Part shown: piece after piece, positions 1,106-60,000 of the stretch
How positions within the stretch are numbered: the stretch's first letter is position 1
Layout of the letters: each line of letters opens with the position of its first letter
NCBI GenBank assembly: GCA_907165135.1
Contig: OU015567.1
Location: forward strand, 15,810,001-15,874,000
DNA from: Oikopleura dioica
Taxonomy: Eukaryota > Animalia > Chordata
DNA length: 64,000 nucleotides
Direction of reading: 5' to 3'
The notes under the pieces: model-generated
Told to the model about the DNA's origin: nothing
The model's database searches: none
Seen by the model: the letters and a program-made list of their open reading frames with translations, nothing else
Made by a program: the position numbers and the translations under genes

Positions 1106-1160
1106 AAGTCGAATCAATTATTTTTAATTTTGAAAGATTCTTTCTCGAATCTTATTGGCT

Positions 1161-4055: not shown

Positions 4056-5670
4056 TCAAGATTTTTTTGTCAGGAAATTTCGGCAGAATAATTGTTTGAT
4101 TGTAATATTCCAGCGGACAAAAGCCGTTTCGCCTTTGAGTTTGACCATTCCATCTTGATCCGGCGTCAATTTCTTCACCGAGATGTAGCTCTTCCGTAGT
4201 ATGATCTCAAAATTCGGCCACCTATAGCCGAATTATTCGTCTATATTTTCAATAATTCTTAATGAAAAATTCGGCCAAATTGACCGAATTATTATTGAAT
4301 TTGTAAGAGTCCTACAGTAAGACAGTTAATGGACTTTTCGTAACCGGCGCTAATTACGTTCGATATCGTTATAATTATTGCTAAATTGCCTGAGACCCCT
4401 CAAAACAAGTCGAAGCTTTTTTCGATTAAAAAAATATAATCGTAAAATTTTCTAAAATAAAGGTTAGGGTTAGGGGCACCTGCAAAAATGACGGAACAAC
4501 CTTACCCGAGGGGGATAGGCTAGGGTTAATTAGGGTTACTGAAGGTAACCCTAGACTAGACCCCGGCATCTTAGGACCGAGGGGCAGAGCCCCGAGGTAA
4601 GGGACAAGTAGATTGGATTATTTTTAACGTATAAAAAAGTGAGTGGTTAAATAAGAGCGCAGTTTTAAATCTTGGGGGCCGAATTTTTCATTCAAACGTT
4701 CAATTTTGGTCGAAAAATTCGGCCATGCTGGCCGAATTATTCATTCAGAATATGTCTTTATAAAAATTCGGCTTTTGGCCGAATTTTGAGGTCATACTAC
4801 CGCTCTTCTTGTTTTGCTGATGAATTTTGTCCGCGTCTGCTTCAAAATCAACGCGTTTTCCTACACAAAGCTAAATTCAAAGGTCCAAAACAGTAAATGC
4901 CTTTCTTGAGAAGCGACAACTTCCAGAAGCCATCCCCGCCGAATTTTTTATTGCTCGATTGATGTTTGATTGTCCATTCTCCTTCCGTCACTTCTATATT
5001 TTCGTCATATTTGAACTTTATGATGGATAAAAAATTGCCTTGAAAAATCTACAATTCTGATTGCGATTTTATCCCATTCCTTCAAATTAAACTTGCAAAA
5101 GCCAGCTTCCATTGCTTTTAGCACTTTTCGCACAGCAGCTTCGTCGTGTTGTTTTCGGACAGATTCAGAATCGTCTCCAGTAAAATGACCGAATCCATTG
5201 ATCGTGGGAAATTCGCCGAAAGAGTGGATTATTTCAAGTCGGTCAGCAATTTTCTTCATTTCAGTGAAATCCTTTTCGATTTTCTCTTTGAGTTCTTTTA
5301 GAGATGTCATTTCTTCTTTCACTTCTTTCGAAAAACCTTCAGTAGTTTTTTGAACTTCTTCAATCTGAAAATCGCGCTCCTGGTCTCCTAGAATCGAGCT
5401 TTCTTTGAATGTTTCAAGCTCAGAAACTCTGTTTTCCAGTTCTTCATTTTTCGTCTTCAACTCGTCTCTTTCTTGCTGCAGATCAAAAGCAAGCATCCGG
5501 AAGGTCTCGTTGTCTTTTTCAAGCTTAGTGATTCTTTCGAAAATCGAGTTCAGTGTTGAATTGTCGATTTTCGTGCTCTCTTCGTCCGAATTTTTGCCCT
5601 TGTTTTCGTAGTAGCTAGTTCCAAGGGAGCTCTCAGATTGAATGATCGATCTTTCATCCTCATTTGACAT
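4056..5670 (-). CDS. Coiled-coil + PRY/SPRY-like protein, kinase-less paralog 2
   Basis: MSNEDERS...; exons to KLTPDQDGMVKLKGETAFVRWNITI; second intron has GC donor (AAAG|gcattt); last exon split by TIR element 4195-4801. Confidence 0.65.
4195..4801. mobile_element. Non-autonomous TIR element in a coding exon, containing TTAGGG repeats
   Basis: TIR GTAGTATGA(T/C)CTCAAAATTCGGCC at both ends; 7-bp direct repeat GCTCTTC at 4188-4194 and 4802-4808. Confidence 0.8.
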
Positions 5671-6346
5671 TTTCGATGAATTTTAAGTTTTCTCTTTTTG
5701 ATTGACAAACATCACACTTACGAGTGACCAAGCTCTTTCGAATAAAATAAACATTACTATAAGAATAGTTTCATGTAAAAAAATCTTCCAAAAGACCCAA
5801 AAAATTTAAGGGTCAATCAGCGCTATTTACAACCTGCCCTTTAAAATCCTGTTTTCAATTTAAGCTTCTTCAAGAAATAAGGTATTTAAAGCACGTTACG
5901 CAAGAAAATTCGCTTGAAATCCGCCCGTGAATGATTTTGGTAATTGGCACTTAGTATTTACTCAAAAGTTTCTCCAAAAAAATTCGAATGCTGCGCCCAA
6001 AAACACGTCGTATGAACGTCAGCTCTTCGCTCCGAATTTTCTTGAAGAAAAAATCAGACAGTTTTTTCTTCATTATCTGTATTTTTGCGTGTTTTCGAAT
6101 GTAGCTCCACGTGGGCCTCTCCAGCTGCCGTATGCAGATCCTGTCGGAATATGCATTTGGCGCATCCGCTATTTATACTTCTCATGCGCCCTCGACCAGC
6201 CTCTAAGTCCGCCCTCTTCAAATCACTTGGAGGGAGCCACTAATGGTGCTTTTGTCAGCCGCTCTTGTCGGAGGACGTTTTACTTTCCCTGCATTGTTCT
6301 TTATCTCAAGTCCGTCCTCAACGCCAAGGTGGACGGGGGAAATTAA

Positions 6347-6834
6347 GGGGGTAGGACATCAAAAATTGGATCTTTATTCAGGCTTTTTCGATGACAAAGC
6401 ATATTCTTTTGTCTCCGTTTGGGCTCGGTAAGTGTAAAAACCTGAGTCAGGGTCCAAGAAAATTCGGAGGACCCTGACTCAGGTTATTATACAGTTTGCC
6501 AAGCCCAAATGGGGTGGTGTCAGGAATCGAAAAAAAATCTCGACTAATTTCGCGTTGGCGGCTACTCCGCGGCTGATTGGCTGGCGAGTCAAATCCGGGC
6601 TTCTGATGGGGAGGTGTCTGGAACCGACTAAAAAATTTCGACAAATTTTGCGTGGAAATTTTCAACCAATCAGAAGCCTGGATTCGGCAAACCAGCCAAT
6701 CAGCAGCCGAGTAGCCGCCCACGCAACATTTGTCGAAATTTTTTTGTCGGTTCCAGACACCATCCCCTTCTGATTGGTGGAAAATATCCACGCAAAATTT
6801 GTCAGTTTTTTTGTCGGTTCCTGACCCTACCCCC
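6347..6834. mobile_element. PIF/Harbinger-like MITE with nested family A (6421-6506) and family C copies
   Basis: TIR GGGGGTAGG / CCTACCCCC; 3-bp TSD TAA on both sides. Confidence 0.7.
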
Positions 6835-6969: not shown

Positions 6970-9354
<2,385 letters not shown>

Positions 9355-10325
9355 TTTGATTTACACCTCTTTCTGAATGGTTGGATTGAAGGACATTTTT
9401 ATTATGAAAAATGCAGTTATTCAACTAGTCATTGATTTTGGGAAATTTTCTTCAAGAAATAGTATTAAATAGTACAATGACACCCTCATTTTACAAAACC
9501 AAATAATGGGAAACAAAAAATATCTAGAATGTTAAAAAAAATTACAAAAAAGTCTTTTCAAGTCGAAAATTTTAGTATTTTCTTGACATTTTATTCAAAA
9601 ATTGTAAGAAAAAAAAATTAAAAAATAGTGAATCTAGGTGACATTATCTCAAACCTGCATTTTTCTTTATAAAAATTAGGAAGTCGATCAAATCTCTAAC
9701 TTACAGTTCGTTTTTCGCCGGCCTGGACCTAAATAACTTCTTGAAAATCAGCGAAGTGATGAAAAATGACAACTTTGGAGCTTCGCAAAAAATGATCTAG
9801 AAAAAAATCTGCGATTGCCTCCAATTTGCCTGGCAAATTTTGCCAAACTGTTTTTTTGCCACGAAAACGCTGGGTATTTCTAGAGAAATTTTTTTCTTTG
9901 AGAAGTTGCGTGAGATTTTTTTGAAAAGTTTTTTCCCAAAACAATTTTAAGTTCAATTTGCAAAATTGCTCGAAAGGATGAAAACGGTCGATTGAAACCG
10001 CCGATACTGATCTACAAGCTTGGAATGTCTTTTGCGCCGGAATGTTTCAATGTTTCCGCGGAGAAGCAAAAGAAAATTCGGCGCTAGAAAAAAGGGAGGC
10101 TTCGGACGTGCCGATCTCGCTTGGCCGATGACATAAATATAGTTTTAAACCCCTTTTTCTTACGATCGGCGGAAATCGCAGCGTTGGAATGTCTTACTCT
10201 GCCAGCGCAAGTGCCGCTTCGCTGGTAAAAGTTGAAATAAATCGACTACGAAGGGCCCATGTCCAAGAAATTCTTAAAATTCTTGAGATTGAAAAAATAA
10301 GGAATACAAAATATAGGAGTTTAAA

Positions 10326-10482
10326 GGGGAGGTGTCTGGAACCGAAAAAAAAAATCGTCGAATTTCGCGTTGAAATTTTCCATCAATCAGAAGCCCGGAT
10401 TCGACTCACTAGCCAATCAGCTGCCGAGCAGCCGCCGACGCAAAATTTGTCGAAATTTTCTGACGGTTCCAGACATCACCCC
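10326..10482. mobile_element. MITE family C (other copies near 6608, 19650, 41132, 63840)
   Basis: TIR GGGGAGGTGTCTGGAACCG / CGGTTCCAGACA(T)CACCCC; internal paired CCAATCA motifs. Confidence 0.7.
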
Positions 10483-12674
10483 GTGTGTGCAAAAACTGAT
10501 TTTGATCGAAAAAATTTTTCGTCCAAATTTAACACTGTGACACCCTTATTTTTCAAAAATCTTTGATAAAACAGAATTCAATAAACGTTTGAATTATCTA
10601 AAGATGCTGAAAAATAAGGGTGTCACTCTGTAAATTTTGAAGAAAGCAACCGATAGCTTCCTCAACAAGTCAGCTTCAACCAAGTGTAAATATTTGTCTC
10701 GTTATTACTCTCCGAAATGTGTCACTTTTTTCAAGAATATTTAGCCTTTTTTCCTGCTCTCGACATTTCGCGACATTCCAAATTCAACTGACAACGCCTC
10801 CAACTCCGTACTTTATGTCGATTAGCAGCTTCAGTTTTGAACTTGTAAAAAATAGCAGTAATTTGAGTCACGTGGCAATTTGAGAATTTCAGTTATTCGC
10901 AAGAATTGGCTTCTTTTGCTTTTTGCATCGGAACACTTTTTTAATTGCGGATTCTCGATTGGATTGAAATTGACAGATTTCAGCCGCTAGTACGTAAAAG
11001 AGCCGACAGATGACGCGTTTAATATTTTTCTTTTGAATTTATTGCAAGTTTTAATAATTCGACTAAAGTTACGATTGAAATGCGGCAGAAAAATCACCAT
11101 TTTGCTTTTGCGACAATTTAAAACGATATTTTTTTCCTAGAATAAGATGAAAAATTTCAAAAAAAGTCAATTTTTTGACAAATCAGAGGGCCGGATTCGG
11201 GGATACCGGCCGCTAGAGAGCCAATCAGAGTTCAGTATTCGGAAAATCATCGAAAAATTTTTTGCGACTTATTTTTATTAATTTGCGACCCTTCTTTGTG
11301 CATCGGAAAAGTCACGTTTTCTTCGATCATTTTTTAAATCAAAATTTGTTTTGTTGACAAATTGTCGATTATTTTCCGATAAGAAGTTGGGCCCGATAAA
11401 AATCGATTAGACTCTTTTTTCATGAAATGCGGAAGGCTTTGTTTTCGAAAATTGGCGATATTCGCTGCTATCTTAAATTTCACACACTTGAGCCAGCTCT
11501 CTAAACTTTACGTAAATTTAAGCATCATCTAAAGTAGCTCTATTCAGCGCTTCCCTTTTTTGCTTACCTTACTCTTTACTGCTGAGAACCCCTTTTCAAA
11601 TACAGTTAAATCGCCAAGATACAGACTCATCTTCGATGAATTCTAAAGTTCAAGCGATTCAAAGATAATTTCGACCAAAATATCCTCCGAAGCGAAGAAC
11701 GAAATTTGTTGAACTAAACGACCCAATTTTCAAGAGCTACCACACCTCGATCTTATCGCAATTTGCTTATCATTTAATGAGTTTTTGTGAAATTGCTTTT
11801 GCAAGGAAGAAAATTAGAAAATTGACTAGGATTTTATTTTTTCTTTTTTTTTTGAATCATAAAATGAACAGGATTATTTTCGTATTGATATATTCAAGCG
11901 TACATAAGACCATTCTCCGTTGAGTTTGACCATTCCGCATTAATGCCAACATCGTCTGCGTCGGCTCGAAAGTCCACGCGTTTTCCTTAAAAGTAAAAAT
12001 CTCAAATTCAACAATCAATACCGTTGAAAGTTAGCCACAGTTTCCAGGAATGCCCGTCGCCGCCGTGTTCTTTGTCATGAGTTTGATTTCGAATCGTCCA
12101 GCCAGCTTCCGACACTTCTAAATAATTGTCGGAACAAAACTTAATTTTGGATGAAAATCGCATCGAAACAAAACTCAAAAAAAACTTAAAAAATGCGATT
12201 TCATCCATTTCCTTCAAATTCAAAAGTTTGTAGCCGGCTGCCATTTGAAAATCTAAGCTCTCCTGGCTTTGAGCGCCGGTCTAGAATCGGCCTTTTCGAA
12301 AAACCTAGTTCTACCTTCTTAATTTTAAATCTTAATTTTAGACTAGGGTTTATTCTCCACGATGTGGTGACGACAGCTTTTGCGTATAACTACACTCAAA
12401 AATTTCCAATCATCGTTGGACTCCATATGCTCTAGCACCTTTACTTTTTGATTCGCTGGAACGTTGGCAAATTTTCGAGAAGATTTCAGTATTGGGTAAG
12501 TAAGGGGGCACACCTCATTAATCATACATTCATTCAACCTTCTTTTACCTGCAAATAAACTATTATGAATTGAAAATTGAAATCCCCAGCTTCTGGGGAT
12601 TCTAAAACTGTATTATACTCTCACCCTACTAAGCTAGAAAAATAGCTTAATTATTAGTGATTTACCCTACTCAT

Positions 12675-12870
12675 CATCGATGAATTCTAAAGTTCAAGCG
12701 ATTCAAAGATAATTTCGACCAAAATATCCTCCGAAGCGAGAACGAAATTTGTTGAACTGAACGACCCAATTTTCAAGAGCTACCACACCTCGATCTTATC
12801 GCAATTTGCTTATCATTTAATGAGTTTTTTGTGAAATTGCTTTTGCAAGGAAGAAAATTTGAAGATTGAC
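12675..12870 (+). repeat. Near-identical copy of 11630-11830
   Basis: Direct ~200-bp duplication read by eye. Confidence 0.9.
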
Positions 12871-13836
12871 TAAATGCGATTTCATCCATTTCCTTCAAAT
12901 TCAAAAGTTTGTAGCCGGCTGCCATTGCTTTGAGCACTCGTCGCACAGCATTCTCGTCGTAGGCACGTCGGACAGAATAAGAGTCGAGGCCGAAGAAATG
13001 CCCAAATCCCTCTAACGCACCAAACGATCCAACAATTTCCAATTCTTGCTCGGCATGAGTTTTGCTTTTTATCGCTTCTTCGAGATCGTCGTTCAGCTTT
13101 TGAATTTGCCTTTTGTAGCCATGATTGTCGTTATTAAGCGTGTTGTTGAGTCGTTTCAAATCCGCGTTTTCTTTTTTCAATCTTTTTGCAGAATCACGCT
13201 CGCCAGAAAGTTTTCTGTTTTCATTCTTCAAAGCAATGATTTCTCGATTCAGCGATTCGTTAATTATCAACGTCGTCTCAGCTTTTGATAGTCCAAAACT
13301 CAGATTCACCGGTGGAATGCGATTCTTCAACTGCTCGATCAAACTGACCAAGGCCGGATGAGTCATCAAAGCAGCAGCACTTTCTGCCAGGGTTCCAATT
13401 CTGGCTGAGCGCTGAGCGACATCTGAGCGTGAGCGAGCGACGAGCGAGCGAGCGATCGCTCACGCTCCGCTCACTCAACTGATTTTTATAGAGAACCGCT
13501 CAGTCGCTCGCTCGCTCAAGGTTAAAAAATATGATACCTGAGCGAGGTTTGAGCGAGGCTGGAGCGACATTGGAGCGAGGTTTGAGCGACGCCTGAGCGA
13601 GGTCCGAGCGACGCCTGAGCTAGGTTTGAGCGACGCTTGAGCGAGGTTCGAGCGACGCTTGAGCGACGTTTATTACTCACTAGCCAATTCTCCGCGCTTA
13701 TTGGCCGAGATCAAAGACCTCTTTAGTTGTTAGCAAATGAATGAGGAGGATTTTCATTCACGAATTTACTCAAAAGAGGGAATTTTTAATAAAGTCTGCG
13801 AATAATTTTAACGTATTGTTGCCAGCAATATACGGT

Positions 13837-14252
13837 TGGCGTGTTAGGTCGTTGGGTTTTCCCCGCCGTCTACAACCATTGAGTTGGTAACAATAAAAAA
13901 TTATTTTCGCCGAAATCCACTAACGTCAACCCTATATTTTTTGAAAATTTAGGCTACACTCGAAAATTGGTTTTGTTAGCTCACAATATCCAGGTGGCGT
14001 GTTAGGTCGTTGGGTTTTCCCCGCCGTCTACATCTGTTGAGTGAGTTCATAAAAAATATTTTTCGGTCAGCCTGATTTTTCATCGATACCCAAGCTTCAA
14101 CGAAAGCTACCATATTTCTTTTTTTTATTATTATTACAGCCATTATTAAACCGCTTACTTCAACAATTAGACTATCCCCATAAATTGGCTATGTTAACTT
14201 ACAATATCCAGTTGGCGTGTTAGGTCGTCGGGTTTTCCCCACCGTCTACAAC
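13837..14252 (+). repeat. Three internal repeats of GGCGTGTTAGGTCG(T/C)TGGGTTTTCCC(C)GCCGTCTACA
   Basis: Copies near 13838, 13996, 14213. Confidence 0.85.
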
Positions 14253-14524
14253 TGTTGAGTAGGTTAACAAAGAATGTTTTGCGGCTAGCCTGATTTTGAT
14301 TATACCAAAAAATTAAAATCTTGAGAGAGACAGGAGAATCTCTGATGATCAAAAAATACATAGGCTCTATTTGAGGCTCTTTTCTGAGCGCGTCGAATTC
14401 TGTGACAGCTGTGTCTACCGTCATGGATTTTTTTATATAAATTTTTCATTGTAAAACCTGCCAAAAATCGGTTAAGACCAAAATGCGACATTGTCGGTTT
14501 TGTCGGTGGTAAGAACCTTCTCGG

Positions 14525-14675
14525 CAGGGTGGAACGTTAGGACAACAAAATTGAAAAAACATTTTTTTTTCTTTGTCGGCGCTGCCCGGCTTTTTGCCAG
14601 CCCGCTTTGGCCGGGCGCCGACTTTTGCCCGCCCGATTTTTTGCCCGATTTGCCCGGACCCAACGTTCCACCCTG
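14525..14675. mobile_element. Small hAT-like TIR element, no TSD recognisable
   Basis: CAGGGTGGAACGTT / AACGTTCCACCCTG. Confidence 0.6.
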
Positions 14676-14820
14676 ACGCTTGACGGAGTCAAAAATTTTT
14701 CGCGTTCGCTTCGATTTCTGCTCGACATTTGGGCAAAATTTGAATGTCTGAACTAGTTAAAATTTTCGCTCGAGCGTCGCTCAAATGTCGCTCAGATATC
14801 GCTCAGATTTCGCTCAGACC

Positions 14821-15611
14821 TGATAGGGAGAATATCCCTCTTAATGTTAGGCAAGAGTCGCTCTTGCCCGTAGCAAACGCCTGTGATCATTTCCGGTTAC
14901 TTCCGGTGACATTAGATGACTTCCGGTTCACTTCCGGTGACTTCCGGTTCGCTTCCGGTTCAACTCTAGATCATTGCTATAAGTGTGCATCCATCCATAT
15001 ACCTTGCAAGAGCATAACTGAGCTGATGCTCGCTTGAAACAGCGCCATCTGGTGCATGCTCTCGCGCCCCATCTAGTGTCGGCTCTCGCGCCCCACCTAG
15101 TGTCAGCTCTCTAGCGCCACGTAGTGGACACTCATGAATAGCTCTCTAGTGACCTCTAGTGGGGACACACTAGCGCCACCTATGGTGAGCACAAAGCTTG
15201 AGATCTCATCCTGATTCATCAGTGACTGAGAATCGACTTCATTCGATGAAGGTCCTGGAACATTCTGGACACCCTTACTCACTATGACTCACGATTACGA
15301 AGGAGAATCATTTGGAGAATCTACTCGAATATTCCATCGCTGTTCTAAGAAGCTTGAAGATTCATCTATCCCGATCAAGGAGCTTCTCGACTGTTCTTAT
15401 TTTCCCTTTTCTGTACTATATAAAGCGTGCACTTTGCTGTTAGTGGATTATTACAATTGAGTAGAATAAAACCGACAAAACCAACTTGACTCTCTTTTAT
15501 CCAGCAGAAACCAGCAGTACCCGAAGAAGCGACAGCAAGTGCAGCATCAACCACTAGGACTCATAGAGTGCTAGTGGATCAGAGAGACCCCAGACATTCT
15601 TCTCCTTTAGA
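14821..15611 (+). mobile_element. Solo LTR
   Basis: 5-bp TSD AGACC (14816-14820, 15612-15616); TG start; TATA-like motif ~15418 and AATAAA ~15465; host GAGCGA repeat resumes seamlessly. Confidence 0.7.
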
Positions 15612-18280
15612 AGACCTCGCTCAGATCTCGCTCAAACGTCGCTCGCTCAGTCGCTCCGCTCGCTCAGCCGATTTTTGAAAAATCTCGCTCAGGCACTCGC
15701 TCGCTCAGCCCTCGCTCAATTCCCGCTCGCTCATCGCTCGCTCAAATTCAAAAATTTTTGGCAAAATTTGGAACCCTGCTTTCTGCTCTTTCGCCGATTT
15801 TAACAACAAGACATCTTCGGATCAAAGATTCCATCGCCGGGAAAAACACTTCTGCGGGTCTTTGCACTTTGCCTACGATGTTATTCATTGTTTGAAGCGC
15901 GTTTCTGCCAATAAATGGATGTCTTTTTCGATTTTACAAAGCTTTACATTCGTTTTTGCGATAAAATCTTTTTAAAATCGATCCTGAAAGTACATAACAT
16001 CTGAAAAATGATTCCAAGCGCCCAGACATCTTGAGAACAAGAAACTTGAGCACTGTTTCCGTCAGTATTAATCATTTCAGGAGCCAAGTAAGGATCTGTT
16101 CCAGCAATTCCAGTCGTCATAAACGTTTCTTTTGATTCTCGCGAAATATTGAAGTCAGCGATTTTGACCTGAGTTAAACTTCAAAAAAAATTGTTTTTGA
16201 ATACTCTTACTTGTTGTCCATCAGCAGAGAGGAGGATGTTTTCGGGCTTGATATCTCGATGCTTGATGTTTTTTCCGTGAATATACGCTAAAAGTCAAGT
16301 AAAAAAGGATTCTCTAGTACTGACTGACTCATCGCTAAAACCAGCTGGGCTGAGATTCGTAAAGCATCATTTTGAGCCCACGGTATCTTATTTGCAGTGC
16401 CTTCTACAAACAGGTCATCTCAAACGTCTGAAAGAATTGGACTGACCGTTGTTGAGCATTTTCTCAAAGAACTGAGCCAGATCACCGCCAGGCATGTATT
16501 CAAGGATCAAAGCATGATATCGAAGTCCATTTGGAGCGGTAAACCGAAAATCGTCCAGCAGTTTAACTACGTATTCGTGATCTTATTTTGTTTTCAATAT
16601 TGAACTTTTTGCGTGGGATCATTTGTACATTTATCATAAATGATTTATGAGTGATAACTGGAAACGTTCCTAGTTGTTTGAGCAGGTTAATTTCTAAATT
16701 TGCGTCTTGTTCTTGGTCGGGTCCGAGAAGGCCGATTCCTTTTAGCATCTTCAATTCGTTTTCTGAAAGAAATGCGTTTTTTATATTCGTTTGAAGCGGC
16801 AATGTACTATTGCCGATATTCGAAAGAGGGTCAGTAACCAGTCGGTAAACCGGTCATTTCTTGAATTTATTAATAGTTACACCCACCATTCAACTGTATA
16901 ATCTATCAAATAAAAGTTTTTGAAGCGCCAACCAGGCCCTTCGCAAACTTTCTAGCTTCCCCCGATAGAGAAAACTCAAAAACGGAATTTCCCGGAATTT
17001 CCAGATTTTACTGAAAGCTCAGAGCCTGAGTTTTCCAAATACATGAAAATTGACTACTCTTGAGCCCGGACGGGCATCAAAAAATAGTTTGAAGGAATCT
17101 AGTACCTATTTCGGGGCTTCAGGTCCCATGAATTGCCTTGCGGGCAAGACCCCTTGAAATGGCACCCAGAGGAAAGTACAAAAGCTGGGCTTTCTAAAAC
17201 TGTGTCATATGACCACAGAAATAAGATAGAGATGGCCCATCTCAAACCCCATTCTTGCCCTTTACTCACCATTTTCCGTGTCTTGAACAACGTAGTAAAT
17301 TTTCCCGAGTCTTGCCTCCTTCAGCTCTCGCAGCACCTTGTATTTCCCATTCAAGAGTTGCCCGATCAAGTCAGAATTCAAAGATGGCTCGGCTCCGGCT
17401 TGCTGTCTCCGGAAATCTTCCAACCCTGGAGCAGAAGGAGCTTGATCCGAAAATCCCTGGTTATTCCGATTTTTCTCAATTCTTGCGAAATTTTCATCGT
17501 TTTCGTTTGAACCATCAGAAGCGTATCCTCTAAAAGGCATGGAACGTCGGCAATCTCCGCCGCGAAAAAGCGTTTTTAGGCGCCGCATTGAAATCGAAAC
17601 TCTCAGTACTTTTGGTGCTTTTGTGAAATTTCGGAAGAGAGAACGGGGCCTGCTGCGTTTGCTATTTTCATTAATCGTATTAAATTAGTTTCAAGATCGA
17701 GGGACTTTGTCGCGATGGAAGCCTAGCGATGCAAGCATCTTGTTTTTAACAATATAGAATAAATGTCAAATTAGGCTCAAATTTATGATAAAGAATGTAA
17801 TTTTTCAGCGAACTTTTTTTGAAAAGAATAATTCTTAGCAAACTGACAAGCACATCGAAGAAGAATATTTTATGTAACCTTCAAAACAAAAATATTCTTC
17901 AAGGCTGTATTTTGATTCTAAGAGCGTCCTTGGGTCTAGGAAAATGCCAGAAAGTAGACGCAAAAACAAAAAATCTCGTTATACAAACAGCTATCTCCGG
18001 AAATTTCGCATTTTTTATTGCTCGCTATTTTCACCAAAAACCTCAAAACTCGGATGACTTTCATTTTTGATTTGTCCCACTGAAATCCCCGGAAAATGCT
18101 TATCCGATAAATTTGGAAAGAATTATAATTAAGAATTCACCATCATAAATGCAGACTTCGAACTTTGCCTGCAAATAGCGTTATTTACTAAGCATCGATT
18201 GCATAATCATTTCTTAAATAAAGTTGGCCCAAATTCAAGAAAACGTCGAATTTTGCAAAAAAAAATCGAGAGAAAGAAAA

Positions 18281-35108: not shown

Positions 35109-35109
35109 T

Positions 35110-35225
35110 GGGCCCGATAACCTGTGTAGAAAACCTGAGTCAGGTTTTGAAGAGGTAAGATGAAAACCCGCACCGAACGAAGCCGCAAAGCCTGACTCAG
35201 GTTTTCTACACAGGTTGCCGAGCTC
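35110..35225. mobile_element. MITE family A
   Basis: Family TIR; flanks CT^AG. Confidence 0.8.
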
Positions 35226-35344
35226 AGTTATTTTATATACCGTATATATCAAGCAGGAATGGTAAGGAATGGGAAGGATCGTTCGGCAAGCGGACTTTTA
35301 ATTAAACCATATCGTTGAAAATATCCCGTTGATGGACGTCAATT

Positions 35345-35968: not shown

Positions 35969-36929
35969 GCAAAACAAGATCCAGCAGGGTCAGAGTTCTT
36001 CCCTTTTTTTACCAAATTTTCAGGGTCACATCACATTTGGAAGAAGTTCTAGTGCCCAAAAACTCGCTGATTGAAAGGACTTTTTTTTCAACAATAGTTT
36101 GTTTGGGCTTATCTTCACCGCGCTTTTTGGCATCGTTTTTCTCAACGACCTGCTGTTTTTTGACAAGAGCGAGGTGTTCCTGTAGAACAACCTTCTTTCC
36201 TCCCGATAAAAAGGATTGTCAACAAGCTTGTTCACGGTTCACTGGGTGTCATCCAAAAACTGGGAATCATCGGAATGGGGAATTTCTAATGCGATGTCGG
36301 CAATAAGAGCAAATACTTCTTAATCGGCATTCCAAATCATTTGGCCAATTATTATGAGTCATAAATAATTTCAACTCTTTCTAGCTATTTTTGAAAATAA
36401 TTGAAAGTAACCGCTAAATCATGATTTTGACCCTTGAAAACAGGCAGCTCTTCAAACGAATGGACGAGCGAATGGCCGTCATCCGGCCACTTCAGCTTGA
36501 ATTCAAGATACTTGATACCAAGGACGCCAAGACGGCCAGCAAGACGTACAATCAAATCAGCAGCACTTTTATTGAGTAAATTACGATGTATCAAAAAATT
36601 GATTTTTTAGAGAAAGCCCCTAAAAACGCACATTTTTAGCTTTAGCATTTCTCTGCAGTATGGATTCGCCAGAAACAACTGAATCAGTAGAACCAATTTA
36701 AAAATCATTTTCGAATTTTTTTTCATAAAAAATATGATTAAAAAACAGAATTACGTAAGAAAATTTCAATTCTACCTCACTTGTTAAAAAATCGAGCGCT
36801 TGATTTTTATTCGCGCATCGAAATCAACGAGGAGTTTTCATTCATTTTTCTTTCGCTGATGAGAAGTGCGAATATTTTTAAAGGCTGTTTTTCGAAATCA
36901 AGATAGGAAATTTTATTTTATGTACAGAA

Positions 36930-39290: not shown

Positions 39291-39397
39291 CTATTTACAG
39301 GTCTTCGTCGAAAATGAAAATTTCCCGGATATTTTTAAAAGAGACAGAATGAAAACAAAAATTCATAATATTTTATTAAGTTTTATTTTTTTATTGA

Positions 39398-41459: not shown

Positions 41460-41621
41460 TTTATCTCTTTGAAAATCAGCGAAGAGGGATGCGATGAAAA
41501 AATGATTTGATTTCAATGATTAATTCCGGCCGGAAATGCATCGACGATTTTTGATGAAAAATGCTTGGATTTAATTTTTTGTTGTTTGACATCGGTGAAA
41601 TTGGTATGGTTTTGTTTATTT

Positions 41622-41661
41622 CAGTAAAGCTTTCGGATGCTGAGATCCATCTTCAGTACTA
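41622..41661 (-). ncRNA. Hammerhead ribozyme (antisense copy)
   Basis: Reverse complement of 42012-42051. Confidence 0.75.
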
Positions 41662-42011
41662 GAATAAAGTGTAAAGAATACGAAAAGAAGTGAAAATATT
41701 TTGAGGGCTAGACTTTGAGAGAGAGTAGCGCACTGAAGTTCAAATGAAAGATTTCAAGAGAAATAAATTTGGTCTAGAGAATTTTTGAAAGAATAAATGT
41801 TGAACTAGAGATTTTTTGAAAATGATTAATATAATCGGGCTTCGGATCATTTTCAAAAATCTCTAGTTCAACATTTATTCTTTCAAAATTCTCTAGACCA
41901 AATTTATTTCTCTTGAAATCTTTCATTTGAACTTCAGTGCGCTACTCTCTCTCAAAGTCTAGCCCTCAAAGGTTTATTTTTACTTCTTTTCGTATTCTTT
42001 ACACTTTATTC

Positions 42012-42051
42012 TAGTACTGAAGATGGATCTCAGCATCCGAAAGCTTTACTG
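42012..42051 (+). ncRNA. Minimal type I hammerhead ribozyme
   Basis: Stem I TAGTA/TACTG, core CTGAAGA, stem II GGAT/ATCC, GAAA, palindromic helix III (AAGCTT). Confidence 0.8.
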
Positions 42052-42106
42052 AAATAAACAAAACCATACCAATTTCACCGATGTCAAACAACAAGAGATT
42101 ATCTTA

Positions 42107-44575: not shown

Positions 44576-44780
44576 TCGGGCACTTTTTGAAAATGATCCG
44601 AAGCCCGATTATATTAATCATTTTCAAAAATCTCTAGTTCAACATTTATTCTTTCAAAAATTCTCTAGACCAAATTTATTTCTCTTGAAATCTTTCATTT
44701 GAACTTCAGTGCGCTACTCTCTCTCAAAGTCTAGCCCTCAAAATATTTTCACTTCTTTTCGTATTCTTTACACTTTATTC

Positions 44781-44820
44781 TAGTACTGAAGATGGATCTC
44801 AGCATCCGAAAGCTTTACTG
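44781..44820 (+). ncRNA. Hammerhead ribozyme in the 3' pLTR
   Basis: Identical to 42012-42051. Confidence 0.8.
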
Positions 44821-44954
44821 AAATAAACAAAACCATACGGATTTAATTTTATTTAATAAATTTAGCTCAATCAGAAAATGAACTGCCGAATAGATATTCG
44901 TGGAAAAATCACGGACCGTTTTTTCCCTAAGCCCTGTAAATAGACAAAATAAAT

Positions 44955-46973
44955 ACAGTTGCTGGGCGGTGGCGAATTCGGAGCAATATTTGCAGAATTT
45001 GAAGAAGGCGATCTTTGCAAACAGAAAAAGCCGGCCGCGCTGCAAATTCTCTTTTTCATTCAGCAGAATCGAATTTTGACGAAAAATGGAAGGTGAAATG
45101 ATCAACGAGCGCTACAAGGCGATCAGAGAATTGAAAGAGTCGAGAGATGGGAAGATTTACTTTCTCGTCGAGGATACTCAAAATGGTAAAGAGAAGTGTG
45201 GAAGGAGCGGTTACGTGATCGTGTTTAGACAACGAGCAGAAAATGCTCAAGGGAATCGCGCTTTTGAATGAACAACAAAAAGAAGACGCGAAATCGGAAA
45301 TTGCTTTGCTCCGAAGACTAGGAAAAGGGTTTATTGACCAGATCTTAAAACTTTCTGGAATGAACTACAAGTTAATGAAAACCTCTCAAAAGACAATGAC
45401 TATGTAGTAAAACTGCTCGACGATTTCGTTTTTACTGACCCGAACAACTTCACCTACCACGCTCTGATTCTCGAATATCTTCCAGGAGGCGACTTGTCCG
45501 AGTATTTGAAGGAGAAACTTCTCAACGGTAAGATCAAGCAGAAGCATTTTTCCATTGCTTTTTTGTTTCAGAAGGAAAAGAAACTGAAGAACCGTGGGAT
45601 GAAAATGAAGCGCTTCGGATTACTGCTCAACTGGCTGTTGCTCTAGGTTTGCACAAATTTGAATAATTAAATCGTAATTTTAAAATAGACTACGTCCATT
45701 CCCAAAATGTGATACACCGAGACGTCAAGCCCGAAAACGTCCTGCTTTCTGCTGATAAGAAAACGGTAAACAAACTTTAACGTCATCAGAAATTTGAGAA
45801 AATTAAGGCAAAACTGGCCGATTTCAACATTTCCCGAACGATCGAGGCGACCAAAAACACCGGTGTCGCTGGAACAATGGACTTTTATCCACCCGAAACG
45901 CTTAGAAATCAAGAAACTGAGCAGATCTCTTTCCGACGAGATTTGTGGCCATTTGGAATTATCATGCAGATGCTTTGTTCTTTCAGGAATAGTTTTAAAA
46001 TCAAAGATTTTTTGATTTTCTTTATGAAAATTTGAAAACTGAAAAAGACATCCCTTCGCAACGGATGACCCTTTGCAAACAATGATGAACATCGCCCAAA
46101 ACATCCGTCAACCAGCAGAAGTCGCCTTTCCGGTCATGGAAAGTCTGATCAAGCAATGTTTGGTCGTCGAAATCGGCGAAAGAGTCGAAAGCGTGACTTC
46201 TTTGATGAAACAGCCTCTTTTGTGGAGTTTGGTTGAGCAGCTCAAGAATAGAATCAAACCGGAAAACCTCGTTTTTGGACTCAATCGATTGGAGACCAAG
46301 GATGTTATTAAGGATTATTTGATTGCGGAGTTGCAGAAGAAACTTGAAGAAACGCAGAAGAAAATGGTCGATTTTATGGGAAAAACCCAGCGGACTTTGA
46401 AGGAAGCTCAAAGCAAAATCTCAAAGCTCGAAACTGAAAACACTAAACTGAAAAAACTGTCGGGTTTCTCTGCGGATCACCACATGATGGATTTGGTCTT
46501 TTTCATGGCGACGACAAACGATCTCAGCACTACGAACATGATGTGCCAAAAGTGCTTCGAGGAATGGCTTCTGGCTTGACGACTTTTAATTTGAAGGAAT
46601 TGGATAAAATCACATTTTTAGTTTTTTGATTTTTGTTTCGACGCGATTTTCATCCAAAATTAAGTTTTGGCTCAACGACAATTTCGAAGTATCGGAAGCT
46701 GGCTGGACAATCCGACATCAATCGAAGAGCAAAAACTACGGCGGCGACGGCTTCTGGAAAATGTGGCTTCTTTTCAACGGTATTGATTGTTGAATTTGAG
46801 ATTTTTATTTTTTAGGAAAACGCGTCGGTTTTGAAGCCGACGCGGACGATATTGACCATTATGATGGGAAGAGCTACAACTCGGCGAAGAAGTTGACGCC
46901 GGATTCACAAGGAATGGTCAAACTCAAAGGAGAACGACTTTATGTCCGCTGGAATATTACTGTAAGAAAGTAA
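44955..46973 (+). CDS. Ser/Thr kinase-coiled coil-PRY/SPRY-like protein (inverted paralog of 36930-39290)
   Basis: Same motifs and introns minus the hAT intron; two single-base shifts in A-runs (~45085, ~46455) mean pseudogene or sequencing error. Confidence 0.75.
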
Positions 46974-47494
46974 TTCTGTAAATTTATATAAAATGATGAT
47001 CGATTTTAAAGCAAAGACTTCATTTTCAAATATATTCGCGCTCCTCATCAGCAAATACTAGTAAGAACTATCTTTGTTGAAATTTCTAGTCGCGAATTAT
47101 TTTTAAACCTATTCTTTTAAACCTTTTTCAATCAATTTTCAATTAAAAAAAATAGAAAAAAGCTTTAATTATTTATTCTTTTTTTTTTTCAGACACATTT
47201 AATTTTCGAAATACCAAGCTTTTAAACCTAGCTTTTTATTTCATGCAAACTTTAATTAACTGATGCAACTTTGATAATAAATTATTTTTAAAAATTAATG
47301 AAATTCTGCATATTTCATTTTCCTGACCAAAACTCCTTGCGTCAATAAAAGTCCAGAGCTTTCCATTTCCCTCAATTCATGCGAAAAACAACTGCCGCGG
47401 GCGGTTTCGTTCTGCATAAAACGGTCGTTACACCCCACCTAGTCTCAATCTTCTAGAAAATTTCAGGAGAAAATTGAAAATCAATTATAAAAAA

Positions 47495-48032
47495 ATGAAA
47501 TTTTTCAACGCTCTCGCATTTTTCGCTGGTTCAATTTCCGCCAGATCCAGCGGAGCTCCAGGATATACTCCAATTCTGCAAAATTTGAAGCCAGGAGGAC
47601 CTCATGCCAGATTGTGGGCGACCAAGTAAGATAGAGAATGGTTAAAACTCGTATTTTTCGAAAATAGTATTTCAAAATATTCACAATTTTGTTTACAGAG
47701 AAGAATTTGGCCCTGCCCATCACCACATCAGCTTTGGCTACGACGAGTCCTCCGGCGAAGTCGTTTTCGTCAACGGCGACAACGACGCCAAAACATTCAA
47801 GGGTCTTCTTCTCCGACTGACTGGCGCTGAGTTCAACGGCATTCCCGGCGGCTTCAAAGGCTACCCCCACCAAAGCAACTATTTGACGCACTCATCTCCC
47901 GCCTTGAAAAGCACTGCCGATGTTCGCTTCCCGATCTCCTGCAATCCAGGCGACAGTGTCAAAGTCGAAGCGACGATGGCGATCAAAATCAACGAGTTCT
48001 TTTTCGATCTCGTCGGCGAATTTCAGTGCTGA
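47495..48032 (+). CDS. Small secreted reeler-domain-like protein 1
   Basis: Signal peptide, SSGAP, PH, FKGLLLR, LTHS, VKVEATM; one GT-AG intron; frameshift ~47568. Confidence 0.6.
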
Positions 48033-48158
48033 TTTTTTTTGTTTGACTGGTATTTGAAATAAACTGTCAACAGCTAGAATGATCTTCAAGCGTAATCGAA
48101 GCCGCAGGGCCACTCAAATTTTTAAATGAAAGAGGAAATTTTCAGCAGATTGAAAATC

Positions 48159-48812
48159 ATGAAACTCAAAATTTTATTCCTTCCTTTTTCGTTTTCTTAC
48201 CCAGGCGGCGCGCCGGGATTTTCAAGAGTCCTGGAAGCTGGGCTCGGCAATCTGTGTAGAAAACCTGAGTCAGGGTCTCAAAGATATTTCAAGAAAAGCC
48301 CTGTAGCGTCACTTTTCCAATGAGTTTCGCCAAATCAGCTTGCCAAAGAAAAGCAAGGGGGTTTTGATCAAATATCTTTCAGACCCTGACTCAGGTTTTC
48401 TACACAGGTTGCCGAGTCCAGCCCGCAAGACCTGAGCCCAACATTGATGAGTCCCCATTCAAAAACTTGGATTCAAAGAGACAAATATGGACCCACCCAT
48501 CATCACCTCAGCTTCTACTACGACGAGTCCAAGAGAACAGTGATCTTCAAAAACGGGGACAATGAGCCAAAACGATTCAAAGGACTGCTTCTCCGAGTGA
48601 CTGGTGCTGAATTTGACGAAATTCCTAATGGCTTCGAAGGGTTTTCCGGCCAGTCGAACTATTTGACGCATTCGAATAATTTAATCAAAAGCACTGATGA
48701 TGTCCTTTTTCCGATCAAATGCAACACGGGAGATAAAGTGAAAGTTGAAGCGACGATGGCGATTCATAAATACTTATTTTTCTATGGAATAACTGGAGAG
48801 TTTACTTGCTAG
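48159..48812 (+). CDS. Small secreted reeler-domain-like protein 2
   Basis: Paralog of the previous gene; first exon split by MITE A 48240-48419. Confidence 0.65.
48240..48419. mobile_element. MITE family A inside a coding exon
   Basis: Family TIR; flanks GCT^AGC. Confidence 0.85.
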
Positions 48813-49169
48813 AGAAAAATAAAACAACACGAACCTGCAAATTTTGCTTCTTGCAATTATTAAATAAATCATGAATAAATGAGTGGCCGTTTTTTCTCAC
48901 CGAACCTTTATTGAATAAAAAATCACCAAGTTTAATTGACTTATTATATGGACACCACAGAAAGAGAAGGTAAATTGGGCAGCATTGAGATCTAGTAGGA
49001 TTGTTAACCTGTGAAGAAAACCTGAGTCAGGGCTAATAATCAAGTTCTTTCGGACACTGACTCAGGTTCTCTGCACAGGTTGCCAAGCCCAGATTGAGAT
49101 AGGCAGAAAAGATGTAAAAATGACAGTGATTGATGACTCATCAATGATGAGTTAAAAAACCGGATAATT

Positions 49170-55123: not shown

Positions 55124-56859
55124 TAGGATAAGAAAGGGAGGTGCACGACGAAAGCTGCGGAGAAAAAAAAAGAGATGAACCGAAGCGACAAAAATAAGCG
55201 TTGATTTTATGTCGCAAAATCAGTGTCGCACGAATCCTGGCGTCTTTTGTCGCGAAAAATGATGGAATTATTCTTTTTTACAAATTTCTCATTGGCTGAT
55301 TTTTTATTTGAAAATTTAGTCACTCAAAAATTGTCGCTTCGTGTAATACGGCCTAAGAAACCGGATTTCTGTCGCGAATTATTTCGCGCAAACGCGACTG
55401 TAAAAAACGAGGCAAACCTGAATGGGTCAATTTCTCTTCGCGCAACTTCCATTTTCCGCGAATTTCTTTGTTCACCAAGTTTTCGTTGTTTTTCTTGCAA
55501 ATAAAATATACACTAGAAAGACTTCGGAATAGGCGTTGTCTTTATTTCAGAACCTTATCGACCTCGGCATGTCTAAATCAGCAATCTGAAATAAAATGAT
55601 GAAAGTCACGAGTTTCTATCGTAAAAAGAGAGAGTTCTGGAAGAGCTTTTTTACGGCAAATAATATGTTTGAGACAGACAAGTCAAGTTTTGTCTCGAAA
55701 AAATACAAATAAAACTGAAGGAACTCAATAAATTTGCAGTTTTCTCGAGGTAACGACTCGAAAGGACAAAAATTTCGACAAAATTCTGCGTGAAAATTTT
55801 CGACCAATAAGCAGTCTGAATTTGGCTAATCAGCTAACGGAAAATTTTGTCGTATTTTTTGTCGATTCGAGCCTTCTCACCTTAGTTTCTTTTTTTAGAA
55901 AGAAAAATTGTATTTTTAGTCGAAAATGCAAGATTTTGAAATCGAAAAAATTTGAGTCAAAAAGATAAATTTCTCAAAAATACGATTTTCTCTTAGAGGT
56001 AGACTACCAATTATGATCGAAAAAAGGGAAAATTCAATTTAGGCACCATAAATCCTTTCTTCAAATAAAACTCTGGATGATTCTACGCTGGCGCTGATTG
56101 GTCAAAGCCAACAGAAAGCCATTCCGCAGCGCAGTTGTCTCCGTTTTTCGTAAAACGTCAAATCTCGTCGCCGTCTCGTAAAAATTAATTTCTCAGAGTT
56201 TTGAAAGGAAGAAAGAAGGAAAATGAAAGGAGAGAACTAAAGAAAAATTGGCGGAAGCATGCGAAGAAAATTGCTCTTTTTATCGATTTTTGGATTTGTG
56301 CGCGCTCAGGATTCAGGAAAACCGGCTCAGATTTAAAGATTTTTGGGTTATTTTAGGTGCTGGCGTGAATCGACCAAAAATGCGACGAAAAAAATACGAT
56401 TTTTTGCGAATTGTTTTTCTGAAAGTCGATTGGCCTATCCGCCCTATCCGCAAATCTGATTGGTCTAAAATTAAACCCAAATTTAGGTCAAAATTGTCGC
56501 ACTTTTTGTCGATTCCTCATACCATTCCAAAAAGTTTTCGAAATTTAGAAACATTTTTTGTCTTTTAAAATTCGACCAAATTTTCGTGAGAATGAAAATG
56601 CCACGCTGTCAAGAAGAAACTCCTTTTCAAACATAAAATTTACGTCGCCTCGGCTCCAAAGTACGAAAAAATCCGTCGCTAGTCATTTCCGTATTTTATT
56701 AGCGCTTTTGATCTGAACACATCTTTCAGCTGCAAAAATGTACAATTCTAATTGACTCAGTCTTATCCCTTTTCTCGGCCTGATTGTACTCAACAAACAA
56801 TCGTCAATCGTAATAATCAAACTGTAAATATTGGCCCAGTGACTGTTGTTCTTTTGTCA

Positions 56860-57022
56860 GGGCTCGGTAACCTGTGTAGAAAACCTGTGTCAGGGTCCAA
56901 AAAGAGCTTTGATAAAAACCGCGTAGCTTCGCGGCTTATTTTCTAAAAAAAGCCGCTGCGCGGCTATTATTAAACCTCTTTTCGCACCCTGACTCAGGTT
57001 TTCTACACAGGTTGCCGATTCC
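56860..57022. mobile_element. MITE family A
   Basis: Family TIR; flanks CA^AG. Confidence 0.85.
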
Positions 57023-57099
57023 AGTCTTTCATTTTTTTTATTAAAAGCAAAAATTCTGAGCCCGAAAAAAAGAAGCCGAAAAAAGCAAAAGCTTTTTTG

Positions 57100-60000
57100 A
57101 CTGGGACGACAAAACCGTTGACGGCTATTTTTGCCACAATTCAAGACTTGCTTTTTTCAATGGCTTGAACGAAAATGGCGATGTTGATCTGAGCAAGTTG
57201 CCGGAAATTCCAAAAAAAGATGCGAACAAGTTTTTGAAGGTAAAATATTTTTTTTTTTTGATTTTGAAATCAAGGAAGATTTTGATTATTTTTTTGAATT
57301 TCTGACTGGGCTCGTCCTAATATAGAAAAAAATAGAAAATGGACACACTTGCCGAGCCCGGGCCCAGATTTCTGAATGTTCACTGAAAATCATCTTTCAG
57401 ACCGAAACGTCCTTCTCCGTGCTAAAATTCGGCGGCTTCTTCGAGCGCTCGCTAGAACGAGTTTCCATCGAAGAATATTGCGACGGAGAAAAACTCGGCG
57501 ACAACGAATTTTCCACTTGTCGAGAAAAGAAGCGGGCTTTTGTCAACGACTTTTGCAAAGAATCCGACAGTTTATTTTTCTCGAAGAATTTTGGATCGCT
57601 GAAGAAGTTTGAAACGAAGCTGAATTCGGTGAGGAAACAAAAGTATGATCGCTGCATGGAACATGTCAGAAGGAGAATGACTCAGGCAGAGTTGCCAATT
57701 TTATAAGCTTAGTAAACTGAGCTTACTAAGCTGCCAGCTAAGCTTATTCAACTAAGCTAATCAACTAAGAAGTTGGCTTAGCTGAGCAAGACTGATTACT
57801 TATGTCGGAAATGATGAGGAATTTTTTAGCAAAGTAAAACTTAGCTGAACTAAGTCGAATCGGAATTGAAAGGCCTATGCTGAGCTTAGCCAACCTACGA
57901 CACATGCTGTAAGACTTTTCCTTTACGATAAGTTGAGCCAAGCATTAGCTAGGCTTAGCTGATTTTGCCAAAAAAGAAATGCAAAAAGAAGCTAGCTAAG
58001 CCTAAGCCGAAAGGCAGCTTAGCCTAAGGAAGCTTAGCTTCGATGAAATAATTCTATTAAACTTAACGCAGTTGAGCTCAGCTGGTTTCTAGAGAAAATA
58101 AGAGAAATTCAGCTGAGCTTAGCCAAGCTTAGCCCACCGCTTATTTTTAATTAATTTTAACCAATAATTTGCACAAAATTTGCAACCCTAGGCTCAGGTC
58201 ATGGGCAAACTCGCTGGAAAAGAAGTGAAAAGTGACGAGGACTCGAAAAAGAAATGGCAAATGGAGTTGAAGCCAGACCGGTTGTTCAGAGGCTGGTGGC
58301 ATGAATTACAAAAGGCGTTTTTGCGAGTTTGCATGACAGACAAAACCGACTGCGCTAGAAAGTGCAGCCACGAAAATGGAGTCTGTCAACTAGCCAAAGA
58401 TCCGACGGCGAATGAAGATGACGAAAAGTGGGTTTATGAATGCCAGTGCCAGCCGGATTACGAACCAGTCGTCTCATCGAACACAGATCCAATGGTCGTT
58501 TCCGAACTTTGCAACAGAACAAAAGTCGACGCTCCAAAAGGCTCGTGCTCTCCCCTCAGGCACGCAAAGAGATACGAAATGGCCCGAGGCGCGACGCCGG
58601 ACAATCCAATGACGGAACTTCGAGACACGATTCCAGTCGACCACCAGTTTCTCTGCACCTCACTGAGGCCAAAGAATGAACCGTGGGATTGCGACTACGA
58701 TATTGAACGAGAGACTTGGCGAAAAAGACGAGCGATTGGTAGCAAAATTGAAAGAAATGAGTTCATTTCGCAAACGGATTTCGGCTACTTTCCCTGGGTC
58801 GTCGAATTGAACCACTATCCTTCCAAGAATTTTAAAAAGCCAAACGCAAAGATTGAGGAAAAAGTTACTGAGAAAGACAAGATGAAAGGAACAGACACTC
58901 ACAGGGACGGGTTCGTACCGGGGGTCGTATTTACCGGATTTTAATAATTGTAGGCATCATTAATTTTGCTAGAAAAGGGGGGGCTGTTCATCCTCTTAAT
59001 TCCAGCATTTTTGGCCTTGTTCATCGCGCCAACGCATTAGTAGCTCAAGCAGTGGCCACTAAAGCTTCGTCTCCTTCATACTTAGAAAAAGGGACGAATA
59101 ACTTATTCGGAATTAGGCCACACATGCTGCATGTGACATGCAAGAGGTTTAAGGATGAACAAGGCCACCCCCTATTATGCACACCAACCCTCTGAAAGAT
59201 GTTCTGGAACTCTGATCGCTGGGAACAAACAGTCAGGCCAGGACTTCATTATCACAGCCGCCCATTGCTTTTGCGCCGAGCAAGAAATCGGTCAATGGCT
59301 CGTCCGAATCGGCATCATCGACAACACAAAGCATCTAAATCTCTACCAAGGAAAATTGGATGCCCTGACTGAAGCGCACCTCGGCCCAGAAAAATACGTC
59401 GACGTGACGATTGATCACTGGCAAATGGGCGCTGAAAATGATTATTTGAATAATGGCTGCAATACTGGAATGGGATCGTCGGCGACTGGAAAAGACGATT
59501 TCGCGATTCTTTATTTGAACGGAAGAATGAGGCAGAAAATTCGAGAGAGTCTTCAGCACAACGTCAGGCACAGCTGCGTCAATGGAATCGACAATTTCAA
59601 TCAAATCAGAAATGTCGATTCGATCAGCGATTATTACGGAAGCAAGTGCTTTTTGGCTGGATGGGGCAGTCATAAAAAAGATGTAAGTACCATTTCTTTT
59701 TTAATAAAGACATGAATTTTTTTAGGAATATATGACGCTCGGAATTCCGAAAAAATCCAACTTCATCAACGTCAAAGTGGTTCCCTTCGAAGAATGCCGG
59801 GACGACCCTATTTACGGCCTGAGCAACGATCCCGGAATCGATCCAGACGAGTTGAAAAACATCGATCCGAATAATTCGCCGTTCATTTGCGCCAAGGGTT
59901 TCGAAGGAAGCAGCAGTTGTGCTGGCGATTCAGGCGGAGGACTGTTTTGTTTTTCGGAAGAAGGCCAAAGTGTCCATTTGCTCGGGCCGCTGCATGGGAC

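Follow-up and report, generated by a model that had tools for sequence, protein, structure and literature searches.

Introners, in which a target site duplication (TSD) completes a splice site, occur in Micromonas, Aureococcus, dinoflagellates, Styela clava and other organisms, and are reportedly the subject of studies by Huff (2016) and Gozashti (2022 and 2025). Introns of the larvacean tunicate Oikopleura dioica that begin with GA, GC or GG and end with AG are said to have been described by Denoeud in 2010. Here we analyze six non-autonomous DNA transposons, E1 to E6, that interrupt coding exons of O. dioica within one stretch of 64,000 nucleotides (nt) of chromosome 2 of the Okinawa assembly OKI2018_I69 (OU015567.1, approximately 15,810,001–15,874,000; hereafter the window), and argue that they are plausible, though unproven, transposon-derived introns.

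The closest described case is that of Fritillaria borealis. Insertions of miniature inverted-repeat transposable elements (MITEs) in genes of this species place terminal inverted repeats (TIRs) and TSDs at intron borders and are removed by a permissive U2 spliceosome; more than 90% of its introns do not have GT/AG ends and are for the most part of the AG/AC and AG/AT types, with a YAY triplet, according to Iso-Seq data and in connection with a duplicated U2AF (PMC11282704, PMC13326754). The work of Henriet et al. (2019, Curr Biol) on Fritillaria introns is taken here as summarized in these two papers. Oikopleura is not named in the searched portions of the introner survey texts, and a MITE origin of O. 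dioica introns is not reported in the searchable literature, outside of which the 2010 paper of Denoeud falls.

Our preferred reading, which we hold with moderate confidence, is that the six elements are a mixture, in which E5 most likely, E3 and E6 probably, and E4 less certainly persist as introns, and in which E2 and possibly E1 need not be spliced. The host U2 spliceosome would remove the persisting elements through a donor and an AG acceptor located at or near the TSD and TIR borders. Both the splicing of the elements and the choice of splice sites are inferred from genomic sequence.

Six hAT-like elements in coding exons

An earlier reading of the window, made from the sequence only, had listed six TIR insertions in coding exons. 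All of them were recovered, each with TIRs and an 8-bp TSD, and with flanks that are coding according to independent sequences or open reading frames (ORFs). Positions below are those of the window, and TSD fractions give matching bases.

E1: 4196–4800 (4188–4808 with TSDs), minus strand; non-autonomous element with 25-nt TIRs, 24/25 paired, and a period of 614 nt; TSD GCTCTTC at 4188–4194 and 4802–4808, 7/8 as an 8-mer.
E2: 13388–15778 (13380–15786 with TSDs), minus strand; composite non-autonomous element of 2391 nt; TIR CAGGGTTCCAA; perfect TSD CTTTCTGC, 8/8.
E3: 38067–38317 (38059–38325 with TSDs), minus strand; hAT-like MITE of 251 nt; TIR CAGTGTTTGAAAA, 13/13; TSD TTCCTTAT and TTCCTGAT, 7/8.
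E4: 39922–40092 (39914–40100 with TSDs), minus strand; MITE of family A; TSD TGTTCCGC and TGTTCTGT, 6/8.
E5: 48238–48421 (48230–48429 with TSDs), plus strand; MITE of family A; TSD CCTGGAAG and CCCGCAAG, 6/8.
E6: 57687–58190 (57679–58198 with TSDs), plus strand; hAT-like element of 504 nt; TIR CAGAGTTGCCAATTTT and TAGGGTTGCAAATTTT; TSD GACTCAGG and GGCTCAGG, 7/8.

Deleting the element together with one TSD copy left an uninterrupted frame at all six sites. Paralogues are empty at the sites of E1, E2 and E3, as well as E5 (in gene F1, below), and E5 is present in the sole orthologous DNA contig. E4 had previously been placed at 39924–40090; the element is real, but these limits are 2 nt short at either end.

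The elements had also been described as unrelated families of at least three types, a view that our comparison does not sustain. Their TIRs do form four groups (E2 and E6; E3; E4 and E5; E1), but all six elements have 8-bp TSDs, E2 and E6 share 15/17 terminal bases, and E4 and E5 are members of one abundant MITE family (family A; consensus start CTGGGCTCGGCAACCTGTGTAGAAAACCTGAGTCAGG, with an end that is its reverse complement, so that the element terminates in ...CCCAG). The window holds at least 11 pairs of family-A termini, counting copies and remnants, of which two are in exons (E4 and E5), and a further copy at 1159–1304 has a TSD matching at 6/8 bases. Classing all family-A copies as exonic or non-exonic by the longest ORF through the empty site proved too noisy. 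In DNA contigs of another individual, which are too short to bridge the elements, word depth in E3 and in family A was hundreds of times that of the flanks, and both are therefore highly repeated genome-wide. TIR starts of E2 (CAGGG), E3 (CAGTG) and E6 (CAGAG and TAGGG) fit the YARNG pattern (CAG.G/TAG.G), while those of family A (CTGGG) and E1 (GTAGT) do not. An 8-bp TSD is by itself not exclusive to hAT, as P and Merlin elements also produce one. From their sequence features, we classify the six elements as hAT-like, non-autonomous DNA transposons with TSDs of 8 bp. Their host genes are young, tandemly and invertedly duplicated, and mostly lineage-specific.

An insertion shared by two lineages

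E5 separates the signal-peptide codons of F2, a gene for a small secreted protein (48159–48812, plus strand), from the body of the gene. The empty site is in frame and agrees with the tandem paralogue F1, which has no element there. E5 is carried at the same site, between TSDs CCTGGAAG and CCTGAAAG, by a metagenome contig from Tara Oceans (L002; length 1664 nt, 90.7% identity over 47675–49040). Host exons are 92–99% identical between the window and this contig, with a single synonymous difference in F2 exon 1 and 92% identity in exon 2. Within the element, the 38-nt termini are 95% identical and the interior is 65% identical and rearranged, with the lower value due to internal rearrangement and not to point divergence. 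For F2 exon 2, synonymous divergence (dS) was 0.31 and nonsynonymous divergence (dN) 0.034, giving a dN/dS of 0.11 (0.065 for F1). The gene has therefore remained under purifying selection while E5 was present in both lineages, as expected if the element were an intron. The downstream TSD copy differs at 2/8 bases between the window and L002, which fits non-coding better than coding sequence and weakly favors an acceptor at ...AAG/ACC (slashes within sequences mark exon borders). In total, 36 candidate splice routes are kept in both copies.

The predicted RNA fold of E5 is a near-perfect hairpin (stem of ~50 bp, −121 kcal/mol, z = −15), which would bury the GT and AG sites inside the element and draw its two borders together; in our preferred reading, hairpins of the long inverted repeats would do so for the family-A elements. 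With its shared insertion and constrained host exon, E5 is the strongest of the six cases, and we consider it most likely that the element persists as a transposon-derived intron.

Family A also offers canonical sites, with CTGT/GTAGAA close to the 5′ end and a set of three AGs close to the 3′ end, and the canonical donors of this gene set, approximately GTAAAAA, resemble repeat sequence. Some elements might accordingly be removed by GT..AG splicing inside the inverted repeats, such that parts of the repeats become coding, or be bypassed by translation restarting downstream, which we regard as quite unlikely. One such route through E5 (AATCT/GTGTAG...ACTCAG/GTTTTC) is in frame and stop-free in both lineages and would add 17 residues, but its sites are among those that the predicted stem would bury, and GT-based routes through E4 meet a stop or shift the frame. 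ATG codons occur just downstream of E5, E2 and E6, yet a restart at the first of these would lose the conserved F2 signal peptide. Border-proximal removal remains our preferred explanation for E5.

The interiors of the two E5 copies can be compared between L002:793–979 and window positions 48276–48383. L002 retains the inner palindrome of family A (AAAAGCCCCGCAGCGG...CCGCTACGGGGCTTTT), of which the window copy has no right half.

Insertions whose exact excision would restore the ancestral message

Comparison of the window with itself revealed a repeated gene pair that hosts E1, E2 and E3, consisting of a short kinase gene beside a coiled-coil orphan gene, with three kinase copies and five orphan-gene copies (A to E). 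The last exon of K1, one of the kinase paralogues (coding sequence 39149–37966, minus strand), contains E3, whose empty counterpart is in the following copy.

Kinase K2 with orphan paralogue E: 44929–47055, plus strand; inverted copy of 36852–39305, identified by self-BLAST, with an empty E3 site.

At the K2 site, AATCAAGAA/ACTGAGCAG, self-BLAST and base-level alignment place the ends of the alignment blocks adjacent to each other at 45913/45915. Exact excision of E3 would use GA..AG ends (CAG/GAACAG...GATAAG/GAA), and together with removal of a GG-AG intron at 38907–38839 it yields an intact K1 coding sequence of 687 nt. Divergence between K1 and K2 is strongly biased towards synonymous change (dS 0.58, dN 0.027, dN/dS 0.05), and the 23 codons downstream of E3 differ by 5 synonymous changes and 1 nonsynonymous change. 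These values suggest that K1 may have kept its function after the insertion, although the dN/dS of 0.05 spans all time since the duplication. The predicted RNA fold of E3 has no excess structure (z = −0.5).

E6 interrupts an exon of a trypsin-like protease gene (plus strand) whose exons are intact and extend from 57078 to 60037 or beyond, with the downstream ones matching the Trypsin family. Exact excision would use GC..AG ends (CTCAG/GCAGAG...GGCTCAG/GTCATG). A JGI contig from a relative with ~68% protein identity (L005) reads ...ERMTQVMGK... continuously over the E6 site, and its junction is exactly the one predicted by GC-AG excision. Two introns of the window are absent from L005, which therefore looks like cDNA and cannot show whether E6 is present or absent in the DNA of that relative. 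Removal of E3 by GA-AG splicing and of E6 by GC-AG splicing would each return the message exactly to its ancestral form.

A search of 56560–57080 for the protease gene's start codon and signal-peptide exon, which in the L005 message read MRGKLLGVLLSISGLVSA, did not locate them. The sole nearby ATG, at 56740, runs into a stop after five codons, beyond which the same frame encodes a hydrophobic stretch.

Family-A sequence also occurs at the protease gene outside of its exons. A derivative of ~80 nt at 57306–57385 (CTGGGCTCG...GCCGAGCCCGGGCCCAG), with a perfect 8-bp TSD (ATTTCTGA), lies inside the canonical GT-AG intron 57240–57400. Immediately upstream of the exon at 57078 is a full copy, 56858–57024 (TSD 6/8), whose left border is preceded by a good acceptor-like tract, ttgttcttttgtcag.

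Weaker hosts, expression and the case for tolerated insertions

The orphan-gene copies in which E1 and E2 reside, and their relatives, are as follows.

Paralogue A: 2856–3959, minus strand; without interruption at the E1 site.
Paralogue B: 4056–5670, minus strand; host of E1, with a coding sequence of ~5670–4056.
Paralogue C: ~11880–15888, minus strand; host of E2, with its ATG at 15888.
Paralogue D: 36930–37855, minus strand; without the E1 and E2 insertions.
Paralogue E: 46073–46985, within the plus-strand arm 44929–47055; without the E1 and E2 insertions.

E1 sits in the last coding exon of paralogue B, which is intact except for the element, and paralogues A, D and E are uninterrupted there. 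E1 has no exact G*-AG excision (G* denoting relaxed donors); GG-AG (+3 nt) and GA-AG (−3 nt) come closest. A protein search with the uninterrupted paralogue at 2859–3959 (minus strand) returned a single NCBI protein, Oidioi.mRNA.OKI2018_I69.chr2.g8393, the locus of which agrees with the window base for base. The exons flanking E1 fall inside an intron of g8393, which jumps from the first exon of B into copy A. The E4 host is an orphan gene encoding a signal peptide and a hydrophobic C-terminus (~41459–39398, minus strand). The only evidence that it is coding comes from flanking ORFs, which four canonical GT-AG introns of 40–47 nt connect and in which the frame is intact on both sides.

Several observations weigh against splicing. 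In-frame, stop-free G[TCAG]..AG pairs within 15–60 nt of the borders number 6–41 per element, and the presence of an in-frame GC, GA or GG donor route for each element, on which the sequence-only reading relied, is borne out, but its significance is not. When the six elements were inserted in either orientation into eight coding ORFs of the window, with 3000 randomly chosen positions per element, 82–100% of simulated exonic insertions had at least one route, and the probability that all six would have one was ~0.59; because routes are at chance level, their existence carries no weight. E4 has lost the terminal CAG of family A on its acceptor side, where it reads CAT, and has no exact G*-AG excision. 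E2 interrupts paralogue C in its first coding exon, and although its reconstructed empty site aligns without gaps to D and E, a 46-nt deletion in the last exon near 11942 shifts the frame off the conserved C-terminus and no gene is called over 9355–15670, so we regard this host as a pseudogene. The perfect TIR of E3 and the perfect TSD of E2 may mean that these insertions are recent, in which case intact host frames would say little on tolerance.

Annotation and expression add to these points. For the hosts of E2, E4 and E5, no OKI2018_I69 gene model was found, in an annotation made using AUGUSTUS with RNA-seq hints, in which 11% of introns are non-canonical (PMC8008620). The model of the transposon-free neighbor F1 was likewise not found in protein searches, which indicates that the annotation is sparse here in general and has not passed over the hosts of E4 and E5 in particular. 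Protein searches with F2 and the protease exons returned only metagenome ORFs, a search of representative proteins with the E4-host exon returned a Tara ORF that stops short of E4, and contigs L003 and L004 also end before the insertion sites. Three RNA runs placed 2–4 reads in total on 34500–40499, 90–95% alike and all at ~35820–35900, with none over any element; these runs appear to derive from a diverged cryptic lineage. A further 18 RNA contig runs share next to no sampled words with 34300–41500, so the hosts of E3 and E4 are without expression support in the listed runs.

Much of this would be expected if none of the six elements were spliced and their routes were coincidental, with the insertions being neutral or mildly harmful and tolerated where hosts are redundant, unexpressed or dying, or where the allele is recessive in the one male assembled. 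The hosts of E1 to E3 all have paralogues in the window, and the assembly derives from one individual (PMC8008620). We nevertheless consider this somewhat unlikely for the set as a whole. E5 has been kept at the same site over ~9% divergence in a gene whose exons stayed constrained, K1 is likewise strongly constrained, and the E4 host retains all of its other splice sites and its frame even though its TSD copies differ at 2/8 bases. In the mixed reading, E2 and possibly E1 need not undergo splicing at all, their host paralogues being decaying or unsupported.

Strict routes and relaxed donors in native introns

Exact G*-AG excision is possible for E3 and E6 and not for E1, E2, E4 or E5, and this 2/6 is not unusual given a simulated expectation of 6–29% per element. 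Among the registers of exact excision, AG/AC or AG/AT ends occur in E1 only (AG..AC) and in none of the other five elements. With a stricter definition, in which the net change is at most 3 nt and both sites are at most 12 nt from the ends, all six elements have routes compared to a product of null probabilities of 0.0105, but the definition was set post hoc, and the six cases may have been selected for having routes, which weakens the result. The excess hints at the survival of spliceable insertions.

The earlier claim that Oikopleura uses relaxed donors holds within these very genes. GT-AG introns of 40–50 nt are typical across the window and, together with the record name of g8393, mark the DNA as that of O. 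dioica and not of Fritillaria. Three native non-canonical introns occur in the genes discussed above.

GG-AG intron: 38907–38839, minus strand, 69 nt; conserved in both kinase paralogues, with a GT one base downstream of the frame-keeping GG.
GG-AG intron: 58905–59198, plus strand, 294 nt; in the protease gene, with a junction that matches the cDNA-like contig L005.
GC-AG intron: 4900–4861, minus strand, 40 nt; in paralogue B, where relatives have GT-AG.

A stronger version of the argument holds that almost any GN donor is accepted, that any DNA transposon in an Oikopleura exon is therefore likely to become an intron, and that such insertions are a main source from which the species draws its non-canonical introns. 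About 33–79% of simulated insertions per element offer a strict, low-damage G*-AG route near the ends, and family A ends in CAG, such that the upstream TSD would need no more than a G at offset 0, 3 or 6. Against this, the evidence comes from six loci, none with RNA support and one in a dead host, and the native non-canonical introns examined have no terminal repeats, including the protease intron 58905–59198, at the ends of which we looked for them and found none. We therefore judge the stronger version to be unlikely, and retain the more limited reading of a mixture.

Duplicated genes and a neighboring open reading frame

The kinase and orphan genes form a birth-and-death cluster in which several copies are frame-shifted (C, and probably D and E). 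An inverted segmental duplication of 2.4 kb (36852–39305 vs. 47055–44929, 79–85% identity) contains the kinase and the coiled-coil orphan gene; the pair recurs at ~11880–17363 and the orphan gene at 2856–5670. In gene model g8393 (P0001; about −200 to 5670, ending beyond the window), paralogue B contributes its first exon and paralogue A its 5′ region and body, so that the model has the appearance of a chimera predicted over two tandem genes.

Exactly between the arms of the inverted gene duplication lies an ORF of 822 amino acids (42107–44575, within 41598–44844) with no Pfam match. It is flanked by inverted repeats (41598–41859 vs. 44844–44584, 98.9% identity) and direct repeats (41846–42075 vs. 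44617–44844, 96.5%). Its C-terminal motif, ...CIYSFVCDC..YIGHTKRQLNTRISEH..., recalls the GIY-YIG nuclease of Penelope-like retroelements.

Comparison with known transposon-derived introns

The sequence-only reading proposed that intron creation may be a general property of this spliceosome and not of one specialized family, which is essentially the thesis published for Fritillaria borealis. Like that species, O. dioica is a larvacean tunicate without a minor spliceosome, and the insertions described here have TIRs and TSDs at their borders and occupy lineage-specific positions. In both species this favors the view that transposons inserted in genes are neutralized by a permissive U2 spliceosome. 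Unlike in Fritillaria, the predicted ends are G[ACG]..AG, there are six loci, exact excision fits two of them, and the case is built on DNA sequence. One could go further and propose that hAT-like MITEs in O. dioica exons are routinely neutralized by a permissive U2 spliceosome, are a main source of the ~11% of introns with G[ACG]-AG ends, and represent an earlier and milder stage of what is seen in Fritillaria. A GN donor in or beside the upstream TSD would then pair with an AG from the TSD or from the terminal CAG of the element, as the inverted repeats fold and the borders meet. We offer this proposal tentatively and hold it to be somewhat improbable in so general a form.

Should splicing be confirmed, the window would document how ordinary MITEs give rise to introns in an animal that has a compact genome and can be cultured in the laboratory, and for which empty sites in paralogues and one shared insertion that can be dated (E5) are at hand. 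It would also link the long-known G*-AG introns of O. dioica to transposon insertion and place the species between canonical genomes and that of Fritillaria, with its almost entirely non-canonical introns. Without splicing of the elements, the window instead shows transposons eroding redundant young gene copies.

The resemblance to introners lies in E3 and E6, where the transposon and one TSD are predicted to be removed exactly, with the TSD providing one splice site, and extends to the occurrence of one family (A) in two different genes (E4 and E5). In contrast to introners, which are specialized families spread over hundreds of genes with mostly GT-AG ends, the elements here are generic MITEs found mainly outside coding sequence. 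Relative to the G*-AG introns already known from O. dioica, the predicted ends are alike, with GA, GC and GG donors and an AG acceptor, and native examples occur in the same genes. The six elements are thus a candidate addition to the known transposon-derived introns, and not a new mechanism.

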